This document shows positions 1 through 34,781 of a stretch of DNA of 64,000 nucleotides, one piece after another (within the stretch, counting starts at the first letter, position 1; each line of letters begins with the position of its first letter). The stretch is taken from contig MCFH01000080.1 in the NCBI GenBank assembly GCA_002104945.1, forward strand, positions 62,001 to 126,000, written 5' to 3'. Both the position numbers and the translations under genes were made by a program. This DNA is from Piromyces finnis finn. Taxonomy: Eukaryota; Fungi; Neocallimastigomycota. Below the pieces are notes generated by a model, which saw nothing but the letters and a program-made list of their open reading frames with translations, was not told the origin of the DNA and ran no database searches.

Positions 1-1159
1 TATCATCAATAAATAATGTAAAAGGTTCAATAAAATATTGTATTAATATTTTTTCAAGCATTAAAATAAATATATATCGAATTAATCATTTATTTATTAT
101 GTTGAAAGTATTTCTTTTTTTTTTTTTTTTTATAGTCACAATATCACCACAATACAATACTCAAAAAAATAAATTAAAATTTTAATTTAATAAATGTAAC
201 AAATTTAGTTTATATTTAATATTTAATATATGTAATAATGTATATTGTAAAATTTGTAATATATATATTAATTTTAATACATTTAAACAATGTATTTATT
301 TATTTTTTAATTTATATAAACTTTTTTTTTTTTATTTTATTTTCTTTTTTGAAATTTGAAATTTGAAATTTCTTTTTTCTTTATAATATAAATATATTTA
401 AAATAGTAAAATTATCTAATTTCAATATTATTGTACCAAATAAAAAAACATCATTAATCATTTTAAAAATAAAATTTGATTTAATAATAATTATAAATAA
501 AAAAAAATAATTATAAATAAGAATAAAAAAAAAAAAAAAAAAGAAAGAAAAATTAGAAATTATACCCAATTAATAAACCAATTTATTTAAACGATTTCTA
601 TTATTGCTTTATCCTCTTGAATATACTTTACAAAAGATATTTATTTGCAATATTTATAAATATATATATATAAATAATATATAATATAATTATCGAGAAA
701 TCTAAAAAGAAAAAAAAAAATAATTATTTGTTGATTCAAATAATATCAAAAATTAAATTTCTTGTTAAAAGTTCAATTAAAAAGTGTAAGCATAACTTGA
801 TAATAGATTTTATTTATTTCAATGGATAGGAAAGAGTATACATTAATATATTGTAGTATATAAAATTATAAAATTTAATGATTGTATTATATAATAATAT
901 TATATAAATAATAATAACTAATTTTAAAATCTGTTTAATATGTATAATGAAAAATCCTCATATTAATAACCTTATTTTTTTATTATTATTATTTTTATTT
1001 TTATTTCTTTATTATTATTTGTAAATAAAATTATATATAGAATAGAAATAATTGAAATTTGTTGTAACAAAATAAAAAATATATACATATACCATAAATA
1101 TATATAAATTAAACTTTTAATATTTTGAATAAAATTAAGAAAAAATACACATTTTTAAA

Positions 1160-2060
1160 ATGAAAAGTGGAATAATATTTTTCATATTTTCAATAATTTT
1201 TAGTATCAAGGTATTTTTATATTATGTATATATTATATCAATTAATTCTTAATACATATAAATATACTAATTATTTAATTGTAATGTTGAAAAATAAAAG
1301 ACAGTACAGAGTGTTGATTTTGCTTTTTATTGTAAATGCTATTGTCCTCCAAATAGTACAATTGTAAAGGTAAAAGATTGCTCTGTATGTAATAAAAATC
1401 TATGTATTGAACAAAAATTATGTGTTTTTCAAAATAGTACAACCACCACCGCAACATCAACAAATAATAACATTTCACAAAATAAACCAAGAAGTGTTCA
1501 AGATGACCAATATAGTGAAATTAAATCATCACTTGTAACATATACTGAATATTTATATGCATCATTATTTGGAAGAGTTAAAAGAAACTTTATGATAAAA
1601 GATAATGAAACTATTATGAATAAAGAAAAAAGAAAAGTAGTTCAAGAAGTTGATAAAGAATTAAATAATAATAATAATAATGAGGAAAATGATATAAAAG
1701 AAGATGATAATGAAAATAACAAGAATAATGTAAAAGAAGAGGATAATAATAATGAAGAAGAGAATAAAGAAGATAAAAGTGAAGAGAAGGAAACATCAAA
1801 TACAAATAATACAAGTAGTACTGATGCAAATAAACCTGAAGAAACAGAATCTGTCATTCATATTATTGAATCAGGAACAGATGATGGATATCAAAAAAGT
1901 GAAGAAGAAAATTGGATGACCGAATGTTTTAGTATGTATCGTTTTAATTTTTAATTTCATTCCATAAAATATTATAGTAGTATTAAAATGATAAATAATT
2001 GAAATGTTACCACTATCCTTATTAACTATTAATATTAAAAATAATTATAATAATAATAAC

Positions 2061-11564: not shown

Positions 11565-11769
11565 AAGCATTATAGAAAGAGAACAAATAAAAAATAATTC
11601 AAAAAAAAAATTTTTTTTTTTTTTAGACTAGGAAGAATATACACTTTTACTTGTATTGATTTATTTAATTTGGGAAATTACATTATATTAGATGATAATA
11701 AATATGGGATATAATAAATAATAAATAAAAATAATAAAATATATATAAATATAAAAAAAAATTAGTAAA

Positions 11770-12215
11770 GTTAAAAGTTCGATGAACTCTGCAATTCGTA
11801 CAGTGTGGGATTGGTCCCTTACCTAATAAATTACATGAAATAAAAAAAAAAAGTAACATCAGGTATAATAGTGTGGTATCCACTAAACTCTCCCATGAGT
11901 TCATAATGTTTTCATTCGAAGAAATACTAACATTGAACCCTGTGTACGGAACATTAGGAATGTTCCTTTGCCATATCAGTACGACGTCGATGCTCTTGAT
12001 TACCGTTAGTTGTCTTACTAAACCTATTAAAAAAGTAGCTTCATTGAGCTACTAATGATAGGAATTATTTTAGTAAGAAAAACTGCGAGAGACTCTCTAC
12101 GCATTGAACATACGACCCCGATGAACTGTAATATTATTACCATTTTTTCTTTCCTTTTTACAAAAGTACTCCTTTTTTCTAGGATAAGAATAGAGTCAAA
12201 AATTAACACACACAT
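11770..12215. ncRNA. Unclassified structured non-coding segment (ncRNA candidate or decayed element)
   Basis: GC-enriched relative to flanks, with no credible ORF. Several perfect or near-perfect hairpins: 11776-11788, 11807-11818, 11948-11966, 12013-12078, 12085-12102. A TATA-like tract lies upstream and T-runs downstream on the + strand. Confidence 0.4.
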
Positions 12216-17700: not shown

Positions 17701-19757
17701 TAACTCTTTTTTTTTTAAAAAAAAAAAAATCGTTGAATAGTATAATAAAAAAGAAAAAATATATAGAAATACTAGGATGAATACCCAAGAATTTTTATTT
17801 TTAAACTTTTCAAAGTATAAAATATTTTAGTATAAAGATAAATATAATTATTTTCATTCTCTTATTATATGAAATATGAAATTATTAATAATAAATAAAA
17901 ACTAGGTGGTATAAAAGAAATTTGTGTTCAATACAAATAAAAGGAGAGTTTTATCTTTACGGTGCATTTTTTTTTTTTCTTTTGTAGCATTAAATCATAG
18001 TCTATTTTATAAATTTTAAAAAAAAAAAAAAAAAAGCTATTAATAATAATGGTAATAATAATAGGAATAACTATTAATTAGCTATTAAAGACAAAGTATT
18101 TAAATAGGCATCTTAGTATAGATAATATATTAAAATACAGTATATTATAAATTTTTTTTTTTTTTAATGACTTTTATCATACTGTATTTTTTTAACATAG
18201 ATTAAAATGAAAAGAATAAAAAAGGAAAACTATTATTATTTATAAAGGGATTCTTTTAATAGATTGGAATTAATGATATAGGATAATAAGTTTTTTTTTT
18301 TTTTTTTTTATAATTTAAAATTTTATGATTTTCTTTTCAATGATGGGTTAATAATAATATACCTTTTGCTAACTTAAAAGCTTAAGAAAAAATTTATTAT
18401 TATTAGTATCAAGACAAGATATGGTACGATTTTTTTTTTACTTATTTCTTTCCTAATAATAGGTTAATAATAATTAAAAAGAATATACTTTATATAAACT
18501 ACATAATTATAATATATTAATATATTTAATTTTTATTCATCCTTTCCAATGGATAAATAGGATTATAATTATGAATAGTTTCAAAATTTTTTTAACTCTT
18601 TTTTTTTTTTTTTATTTTAAATGATAGCAAATATTTTTTAAAATCTTTTATTTTCATTAAAATATATAATACATATGTATTTAAAAATAAATGAATGAAA
18701 ATTGGGTATGATGTATTTCTAATCATTTTAATTAAAAAAAAAAGGGGGGACAAGTATTAATGTTAAAAGACATAATTGTATTTAACTTTCAATAGCCATC
18801 TCAAGTAGCCAAGATCGAAAATTTGTCAAAGAGGAAGGATGACGGGAACAAAATTAGGGTCTTTATGGATGGCACTAAGTCTTATTGACTTGTTACACAT
18901 TAGGATTGATAATTAATTTTCTACGCACTTTCATTCCTATTTATACCCATCATTATAATACTTTTGAAAAGAATTTGTTAAATATTGAAAACCATTTTTA
19001 TAATAATAATAATGATATTGATGATGATGACGATGACGATGATGATGATACATTTGGGTATAGAAATTATTCTTTCCATTTAATTGCTACTCCCCCTTTT
19101 TTTTTTTACATTAAAGCGTATTACTGGATGGTAAAAAAAAAAAAAAGTTTTATGATTGAATTAACATTATTCCGTTATAATTATTAATCTATCAATCTAT
19201 ATACATATTTTTTAAAAAAAAAAAATATTTGTATATATAGTTTTATTAATATTTTCATATTAAAAAGTTTCAATATTTTTATTCATGATAATGGATATTT
19301 TATAAATTATTTTTTTTTTTTTTACATGACAATAATAGAAATAACATACATTAATAATGATCCTATGAATAATGGTATTTTATAGTAAGAGTATTAAAGT
19401 TTGAATCATTCTAATAGTTTAAATAGTAATTTAGTTAAATGATAGTGTTTTTAATAATCCAATAAATCATAATGTGTAATATTATACTAGTAATGGATGC
19501 AAAAAAAAGTATATATCTATCTATTTATTTAAATTTTTTCTTAAGTAAGGTTTATAAAGGTTTAATAATAATACATGGGGATGAAAAGAACTTTTTGCAA
19601 GGGTTAAATGAAACTAGACACTTCATAGAGAAAATATTTCTCAATTTTTAATGATCAAATGCAAAAACTTTTAATTATTGAGCACTAGCCAACAGCAATG
19701 GACATTATTATTTGAAAAAGGTTTAAAACCAATAACTAAAAAAGAGTATGTCAATGC

Positions 19758-32400: not shown

Positions 32401-33056
32401 AAAAATAAATATAAAAAATACCAATAAATTCATTCTCTTTATAAAAAAGAAATAAATTTATTTTATAATAAATAGACTTTGTGTTTTTTTTTTAAAAAAA
32501 AAAAAATCTTTTCTTATTGGGGATTTCACAAAAAAAGTTATATAGACTTTTAATTAATATTTAGAAAAAGGAAATCAACCCAGGAAAAATTAAATAAAAA
32601 GTAGAAGAATAGGAAAAAAAAAAAAAACTAAAAAGTTTTAATAAACAAATTGAAACTATAAGCATAGGAATAACCATAATCATAATTACATGTCTGTTAA
32701 ATCTTATGAATAGATTTAAATAACATTATGATCATTTTAATGAATGATGTGTGTGATTAGTTTTTAATTTAATTTTTTTTTATTTTGTTGTCCATGGAGG
32801 ACCATAATACCAAAAAACTTTTTTCTTTTTTTTTTTCCTTAAATAAAATAAATATTAAATTATAACCGATTGATGACTTGTTGTGTTTTCCTTTTTTTTT
32901 TTTTTTTTAAAAAGGTCATCGGATGAAGCAGAAAAAGGATCAACAAAACCCATGATGTCTTTTTTTTTTTTTAAATGATATCATCCAAATACTAATTATG
33001 ACTCTTTCTATTGAAATATATTTAACAATTAACAATTAATAAAAAAAAGATCAACA

Positions 33057-33633
33057 ACCTCACTCTTGGCATGTATAGTCGTTCCAGTTTTTATCCTGGT
33101 TGTTAAGGCGTTTCCTTAGCATACATAAGGCTTCTGGTTCGACCCCGCAGATGTCAGTGCCTGTGGATTTTCCCACTGGGTTTGCCATGGGTTGGGTTAT
33201 GATATTCAGGTAAGTATAAATGAACTTTCTAATTTACTACTATGATAATAACACTCGTCTAGCCGGCCTGAGAGGGTCTAGTGTACATGGTACATTCCAA
33301 ATTAGAACTTAATAAGTGGTGACTTAGGCTATGCCAAAAACACATAATATTCCTTAATCAATTTAAGTGTAAACATTAGGGGGCGGTTGACACGTGATCA
33401 AATTGACTATAAGAGGCTTAGCATTGTAGTTGTGAAATATCGTACAACGACATGCATCTAATGTACATGGATTAAGTGAGCGTCGAAGCTGAAGAAACAG
33501 TATGACAGACCAGGAGGGTCACAACCACCTAGCAATAGGAATGAGCCAACGTTTCTCTAAGAACCACCATTGGAGCTAACTCTGATCGATGGGAGAAATG
33601 CACTCGGAAGTTAAAAAAAAAAAAAAAAAAAAA
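33057..33633 (+). mobile_element. Candidate tRNA-derived SINE with poly(A) tail and target-site duplication
   Basis: tRNA-like head 33068-33156 (A-box-like TAGTC..TGGTTGTTAAGGCG; B box GGTTCGACCCC at 33136-33146; GGCATGT/AGATGTC acceptor-like pairing). GC-enriched body, A-tail 33613-33634, and ATCAACA at both 33050-33056 and 33634-33640. Confidence 0.75.
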
Positions 33634-34781
33634 ATCAACATCGTATTGTAATAAAAATGTATACAATTCAATATTAAATAATAAAATAAACCAATAAAAC
33701 TATAGAAATGACTTTTATTGTATTACAGAAAAAAATAAAGTCGACTTTGAAATTTGACCTACACTTTAGATGATGACTAAACAAACAAACAAACAAAAAA
33801 AGAAAAAACACAAAAAGGAGTTAATATGAATCACCTTTTTTTTTCTGACTAACATTTTTGTAATCAGTATATACAAAAAAAAAAAAAAACACATTGTTGT
33901 ATTCAAACATTTGAGTAAAATTTAATTAATATATATGTAGTATGTAGAGCAAAATCTATATATATCTCTATTTGTAAAATGATGTAGTATAACCCTAGGA
34001 AGAAGATTATTTCTTTTTTTTTTTTTTTCATTCCGTAATAATAAAAATTATGATAAAAGTAAAATATTTTTCAAATTTCATTCTTTCTTTCTTGGTAAGC
34101 ATGCAATACTTTTTAGGTTTGTTTCTTGTATTGTCAAAGTTCTCATTCCATAAATTAGACTTGTTTTTAGGTGATGAGATGATGTTTTTGTATATTTGAA
34201 AGTTGATTCATTATCATTTAATTATTTATATTATTTATTATATACTATAATGTATTCCATATTAAATTTATTCTAATCCATTTTTATTTATTTAGGGTAA
34301 CACCAAAAAATTTGTTTATTATTACCATTTTTATTTTTTAATATATTACGGTATATATTAGAATGTTTGTAAAATAAAAAGATTCATTTAAAAAGAATAA
34401 TAAATCTAAAACATTAATAAATTCATTGAATGGTGAATGAATGAATGAATTCAATGACACCAATGAAAATGCATTAAAAGAAAGAATAATATTAAAAATG
34501 AAAAAATGCAAAGACCATTTCCTTTTTTAGTTATTCCTTCATTTCAATTTCTTTTTATTAATTTTTATATTTGTTGAAATGAGAAAATAAAAAAAAAAAG
34601 TAATTATTAAACTTTTTAAGATGTTGAAATAATTCTCTATCCCTTTTATTAAGAAATTTATACTATTTTATCTTTTATAACAAGAATAATTCTAGTAAAA
34701 TAGTGATAGATGGTAATAGATGGTAATATGCATAGACATAATTAATAATGATTTTAATGGTGTTACTTACTACTACTACTG

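Follow-up and report, generated by a model that had tools for sequence, protein, structure and literature searches.

The mammalian poly(A)-tailed or "relaxed" pairs, with Alu and L1 as the best-known case, combine a non-coding short interspersed nuclear element (SINE) of the 0.3- to 0.5-kb class, whose tail is encoded in the element and which has no poly(A) signal, with a long interspersed nuclear element (LINE) that mobilises it in trans. In the "stringent" pairs, such as eel UnaSINE1/UnaL2 and those with CR1-, L2- or RTE-type tails, the SINE carries a short hairpin-forming segment of the partner LINE, taken from its 3' terminus. SINEs have rarely been described in fungi, and earlier examples (Mg-SINE of Magnaporthe, Foxy of Fusarium and EGH24-1/Eg-R1 of Blumeria) are about 0.5 kb long and have many copies, a box resembling that of RNA polymerase III (Pol III) near the 5' end and an A-rich 3' end. 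Here we describe a family that matches the relaxed pairs in size class, lack of coding capacity, encoded tail and lack of a poly(A) signal, and the fungal SINEs in the features just listed. This family, famA, was found in Piromyces finnis, of the phylum Neocallimastigomycota, through a copy in a stretch of 64,000 nucleotides (contig MCFH01000080.1 of assembly GCA_002104945.1, positions 62,001 to 126,000 of the forward strand). We call the whole stretch the window, and coordinates without a locus name refer to it.

The element is very probably a non-autonomous, non-coding, poly(A)-tailed and LINE-mobilised SINE-like retroposon, and its copy in the window a very recent insertion. The sequence set searched contained 56,455,805 bases in 232 contigs; the genome of P. 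finnis is given as 56.46 Mb in 232 scaffolds (PMC6414434, Table 2). All 40 scored matches to the element were 99–100% identical over about 548 nt and lay on many contigs, as did near-identical copies of the family (99.6–100%). A 27-mer from the 3' end of famA matched the genome 292 times with at most two mismatches (control, 0), which gives at least 292 3' ends, and a 23-mer from the head occurred 232 times (control, 0). When heads were paired with 3' ends, about 69 of the first 100 3' ends listed had a head at the expected distance of 467–471 nt and about 31 belonged to 5'-truncated copies, so that about 70% of the family appears to be full length and about 30% truncated. The 30 copies retrieved differ from their consensus by 0.23 sites per 536 nt, a lower bound on the divergence, as these copies are the top-scoring ones. 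They share the 5' start AGTCGTTCCAG, end in A tails of 12–130 nt (median 32) and, in 28 cases, are flanked by exact and mutually unrelated target-site duplications (TSDs) of 7–15 bp (median 12), which lie at A/T-rich sites as they do in Alu and L1.

Target-primed reverse transcription by a LINE enzyme is indicated by the constant 5' end, the A tails of differing length, the independent TSDs and the 5' truncations, and the longest open reading frame (ORF) of 45 amino acids agrees with the short, non-coding and dispersed character of a SINE. As the roughly 300 copies are nearly identical, the family is probably still moving. An initial annotation, made from the letters of the window alone, had proposed a LINE-mobilised SINE family without a known description from this lineage; the number and marks of the copies bear out the first part, and our literature search returned no description of SINEs for Neocallimastigomycota or anaerobic gut fungi. 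Scans of metagenomes with a 21-mer of the head and with the two-hairpin module described below gave no match in either case.

Candidates for the autonomous partner are present: at least two lineages of LINEs with an apurinic/apyrimidinic endonuclease (APE) and a reverse transcriptase (RT) reside in the genome. LINE-1 is 5.78 kb long (locus L072:1200-6981), its copies are mutually 99% identical, and its single ORF of 1432 amino acids contains the domains Exo_endo_phos and RVT_1, with human L1 ORF2p as the closest relative of solved structure (E = 4e-35). In this respect, too, famA resembles Alu, in that mobilisation in trans would depend on an APE- and RT-bearing LINE whose RT is nearest, among solved structures, to that of human L1. 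LINE-2, whose ORF2 is 31–45% identical to that of LINE-1, was recovered in pieces, the 3' part at L074:1-1282 and the 5' part at L072:6982-8667 and L075:27-3302. A 60-mer from close to the ORF2 end has 572 genomic matches, and open frames of about 1512–1527 amino acids are found at 50 or more places; LINE-2 thus appears to be abundant and intact.

What ties famA to one of these lineages is a 50-nt module. Positions 402–451 of the element (33478–33527 of the window) align with the last codons of LINE-2 ORF2 (L074:932-984) with 45 of 50 bases identical, and the local alignment score of 66 far exceeds the null (22.8 ± 2.3, maximum 30). A second family, famB, carries a 24-mer that is identical at 22 bases to the homologous codons of LINE-1 (score 38; null 22.8 ± 2.6), and the cross pairs, famA with LINE-1 and famB with LINE-2, score at the null. 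In a BLAST comparison of the element with LINE-1, the A tail alone matched. Both modules correspond to homologous ORF2 codons, and each SINE has sequence in common with one resident LINE lineage specifically. The same pairing is seen directly before the tail, where famA and LINE-2 read GTT and famB and LINE-1 read AGTCT. Each module is predicted to be able to form two small adjacent hairpins, which in famA are GCTG-AAGAAA-CAGT and GACC-AGGAG-GGTC; the stem of the second reads GGCC/GGCC in LINE-2, GACC/GGTC in famA and GATC/GGTC in an old relative of famA, and is paired in all three, the changes consisting of one compensatory double substitution and one wobble.

From these matches, we consider it most likely that famA is mobilised by LINE-2, the handle being the module together with the tail. 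The ORF2-end module and the terminal GTT would mark the abundant, intact, L1-like LINE-2 lineage as the source of the enzyme, and it is probably by way of the module and the A tail that the SINE RNA would attract the LINE protein. Both LINEs have AATAAA 20–28 nt before the tail and neither SINE has any such signal, so SINE tails would be inherited from the template, as in Alu; the A stretch of the parent copy, and not addition at a poly(A) signal, is then the probable origin of the tail.

A number of observations weigh against this interpretation. The conservation of the module's structure is not significant (three sequences; 179 of 500 shuffles), and the local fold z-scores of the module are weak. 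The 85 nt of famA that lie between the module and the tail match no LINE, so that recognition through the module is something that we infer. Nor is the shared region a 3' terminus recognised by an RT, as the module is internal in both partners, 85–135 nt from the tail in famA and 265–317 nt in the LINE. LINE-1 copies are likewise young and intact, so mobilisation through the poly(A) tail alone, by either LINE, is possible as well. The window copy itself is atypical of famA in its 7-bp TSD and in the filler at its 5' junction (see below). Finally, the public runs that match the element are contigs without ends or strand. Seven such runs, under four coded organism labels, contain 60–92% of the element's words and none is recorded as RNA; the four examined consist of contigs of unknown kind in which the element is covered without differences and its flanks are uncovered. 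In one run the word depth of the element is very high, a value that either the genomic copy number or a high RNA level would explain.

Unlike Alu, famA contains a segment specific to the lineage of its LINE, T5 and T4 runs within the element, and a head that is not derived from 7SL and matches no Rfam family. It is like the stringent pairs in having a short hairpin-forming segment from the partner LINE, with famA and famB each matching a different LINE lineage, and it differs from them in that the end of the coding region, rather than the 3' terminus, supplies the segment, that the terminus of famA is a plain A tail and that the sequence between module and tail is unrelated to the LINE. From the fungal SINEs named above, to which it is likened by description, it is set apart by its phylum, by near-identical copies that imply current activity, and by the LINE ORF2-end module and a conserved 16-mer resembling a splice donor.

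The LINEs show some further peculiarities. LINE-1 and LINE-2 begin alike, with ATCCGTGGTATTCG (L072:1195-1215, L072:6980-7000 and L075:3290-3305, minus strand), despite the 31–45% identity of their ORF2. A full-length LINE-2 follows directly after the A tail of LINE-1 in L072, and in L075 about 180 nt separate the two. About 1.4 kb upstream of the LINE-1 ORF (L072:1200-2598) contain no ORF of 150 amino acids or more, which means that LINE-1 has no ORF1 or else an exceptionally long 5' region. Towards its C-terminus (L074:400-700), LINE-2 ORF2 has a long Asn/Ser-rich, low-complexity (AAT AGT)n insert, which LINE-1 does not have. At G000:C1:1537975-1540861 and 1549406-1550407, the 60-mer of the LINE-2 module is repeated regularly, about every 942 nt, which suggests tandem arrays of LINE-2 3' ends, formed perhaps by repeated insertion into A tails. 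Within the window, a 5'-truncated 3' fragment of LINE-1 (11611–12131, minus strand; 85% identical) spans the ORF2 end with the hairpin module and the 3' untranslated region (UTR), and short fragments at 18590–18740 are 78–87% identical to the 3' UTR of LINE-2.

The second family throws light on the architecture of famA. famB was found at L018:~731-1258 on the minus strand, and a first look gave 246 candidate matches with identities of 69–100% and graded 5' truncations. The two families agree in their first ~96 nt (33077–33172 in the window; ~85% identity, with a BLAST match at L018:1176-1254), then, after about 30 unalignable bases, in the 16-mer ATTCAGGTAAGTATAA (33204–33219), and in the A tail; their bodies are unrelated by alignment. 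The 16-mer is identical at 16 of 16 positions amid sequence that cannot be aligned on either side. In having one conserved module while the remainder differs between families, the arrangement is like that of CORE-, V- and Deu-SINEs, the difference being that the common part consists of a 5' head and a 16-nt motif rather than a central domain, and that two families have been seen. In L018, the famB copy (731-1258, minus strand) has its own TSD, ACAGTATA, and stands head to head with a famA copy (1501-2051, plus strand) at a distance of about 250 nt. At G000:C150:542372-542614, on the minus strand, three exact head 23-mers are spaced by 110 nt, and among the matches listed, neither a famA 3' end nor a top-scoring famB body lies near them; this trio could be a source-gene array of the head or a rearranged SINE.

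The initial annotation had taken the head for a degenerate tRNA, and a classical tRNA-derived SINE, in which a decayed tRNA gene with A and B boxes drives transcription of the whole 536-nt RNA by Pol III, is a possible but doubtful alternative for its origin. The B box proposed there is real: GGTTCGACCCC lies at 33137–33147, at +60/+61 from the RNA 5' end, and the consensus GGTTCGANNCC has a single, perfect match at +60 in both families, above chance, inside the head 23-mer with its 232 genomic matches against none for the control. A distance of 60 nt from the 5' end is that expected of a B box in a tRNA gene, and a run of four or five T that follows 22–28 nt past the B box in both families resembles the remnant of a tRNA terminator; the absence of poly(A) signals from both SINEs and the conservation of the head as a module between them fit the same idea. 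However, ARAGORN found no tRNA in the window or the retrieved loci at default, 90% or 80% thresholds, and its calls at 70% have incompatible folds in famA and famB. Rfam returned no family at E ≤ 10, neither on 1.7 kb nor on the head searched alone (151 nt), and thus no tRNA, and neither family has a match to the A box. Degenerate-pattern searches for a host tRNA gene with the layout of the head's anticodon loop and T arm, SINE copies excluded, gave no match each, an absence that is weak evidence as the variable positions of the patterns leaned partly on tRNA-Ala sequences.

The predicted structure of the head speaks against the same alternative. The supposed D-loop and anticodon-loop pieces, GTTAAG and CTTAGC, pair with each other, and the loop between them has been replaced wholesale, reading GCGTTTC in famA and ACCCCCG in famB; in the same fold, the 5' end is base-paired to the B-box region, and no cloverleaf is formed. 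The fold z-score is significant for famA (−3.25) and not significant for famB (+0.35). Internal T5 and T4 runs are expected to hinder or terminate Pol III, and in famA they occur at +12 and +92. The first of these (33088–33092) had been read as a possible defect of the window copy, but it is present in the consensus of all 30 copies, with famB reading TTTCT at that place, so it is no lesion peculiar to the one in the window; its presence would, if it has any bearing, speak against the family as a whole being transcribed efficiently by Pol III. Taken together, the B box, conserved at +60, points to Pol III; the lack of an A box, the T runs inside the element and the U1-complementary motif considered next count against a Pol III unit of the classical tRNA type, and a tRNA origin of the head is no more than a possibility.

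The 16-mer ATTCAGGTAAGTATAA is a perfect 5' splice-site consensus, and the CAGGTAAGTAT within it can pair at every base with the conserved 5' end of the U1 small nuclear RNA (U1 snRNA). In famA, the donor motif opens an AT-rich, intron-like stretch of 53 nt (33210–33262; GTAAGT...CTAAT...TAG) with a branch-like CTAAT inside and TAG at its end. We found no sign of its removal: the contigs of the four public runs contain no splice joints, and all 30 genomic copies keep the stretch. The 5' regions of the LINE-1 and LINE-2 copies examined contain neither AGGTAAGT nor TTCAGGTA. These features allow a more specific reading of the two families, in which their heads would be a dedicated non-tRNA module that ends in an 11-nt site perfectly complementary to U1 snRNA, each family being paired with its own L1-like LINE lineage through the two-hairpin module from the ORF2 end. 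We regard this full combination as unlikely. If true, it would mean that a LINE system of the poly(A) type recognises RNA in a lineage-specific manner, and that binding of the U1 small nuclear ribonucleoprotein (snRNP) helps the SINE to propagate, for example through protection of the transcript or its handling in the nucleus.

Two other explanations deny famA the status of a SINE, and both are improbable. Copies of famA might have arisen as processed pseudogenes, by retrocopying of an ordinary, abundant non-coding RNA of the host, rather than from an element adapted to mobility. A fixed RNA 5' end and a high GC content in an AT-rich genome would be expected on that account, and the head trio at C150, spaced by 110 nt and with no SINE body listed nearby, could be the array of source genes. 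No Rfam family was matched, however; one head on two unrelated bodies, each with the module of a different LINE lineage, is typical SINE design, and processed pseudogenes do not usually come anywhere near some 300 near-identical copies in a genome of 56 Mb. Still less probable is that famA is an internally deleted LINE-2 that has lost its coding region: the 50-nt segment with its 88% identity to the ORF2 end and the GTT before the tail would both follow from such a deletion, but the element has no similarity to the LINE-2 5' end (L072:6982-8667 and L075:27-3302) or to its 240-nt 3' UTR, and its head is shared with famB instead.

The body had also been proposed to be a folded or catalytic RNA with GNRA-capped hairpins. 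The two hairpins are present where they had been placed, GGCCT-GAGA-GGGTC at 33265–33278 and CCTA-GCAA-TAGG at 33528–33539, the latter in the minimum free energy (MFE) fold, and the sequence allows a few further short hairpins. Their number is at the level of chance, as two GNRA-capped 4-bp stems are found in dinucleotide shuffles with P = 0.07 (G–U pairs allowed) or 0.08 (Watson–Crick pairs only). The MFE of the whole element, −136.7 kcal/mol, is no better than that of dinucleotide shuffles (mean −137.1 ± 6.8 kcal/mol; z = 0.06), Rfam gave no ribozyme or group I/II intron family at E ≤ 10, the 87% identical relative at L066:2448-2632 has AACA for the GCAA loop and lacks the 5' arm of the GTTGT/ACAAC stem, and the bodies of famA and famB are unrelated, all of which makes a ribozyme-like body the least credible of the explanations considered.

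As a LINE-mobilised SINE, then, the window copy can be delimited closely; all of its features are on the forward strand. The 536-nt, non-coding element spans 33077–33612, followed by an A22 tail (33613–33634) with neither AATAAA nor ATTAAA upstream. Its GC content of 41.6%, against 18.6% and 19.6% in the flanking kilobases, agrees with the GC-enriched body that had been noted, and the B box, the motif GTTAAGGCG (33102–33110), the T5 run, the tail, the GNRA stems and the TSDs following A runs all lie at, or within one base of, the positions given in the initial annotation. The TSD ATCAACA stands at 33050–33056, after a run of eight A, and again at 33634–33640, where its first A is common with the tail; at 7 bp, it is the shortest among the 30 copies, the others being 9–15 bp. 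The start of the element was originally placed 20 nt too far upstream, at 33057, as the family begins at 33077. The intervening 33057–33076 are taken up by ACCTCACTCTTGGCATGTAT, a filler of 20 nt that is foreign to the family (45% GC, unlike the local flank) and missing from the other 29 copies. It occurs once in the genome at up to two mismatches, no source for it was found there, and none of its 12-mers occurs in the other retrieved loci. A switch of template as reverse transcription ended is one way in which the 5' junction may have acquired these bases.

For the organism, the immediate consequence is practical: famA is worth masking in gene prediction, as false exons or calls of "structured RNA" can arise from its GC-rich copies and perfect donor site in a genome of 18% GC. 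As the family is young and probably still moving, P. finnis offers a possible system for the study of a SINE–LINE partnership in an early-diverging fungus, in which the parallel pairing of famA with LINE-2 and of famB with LINE-1 would serve as an experiment of nature on the choice of RNA by an L1-like enzyme.

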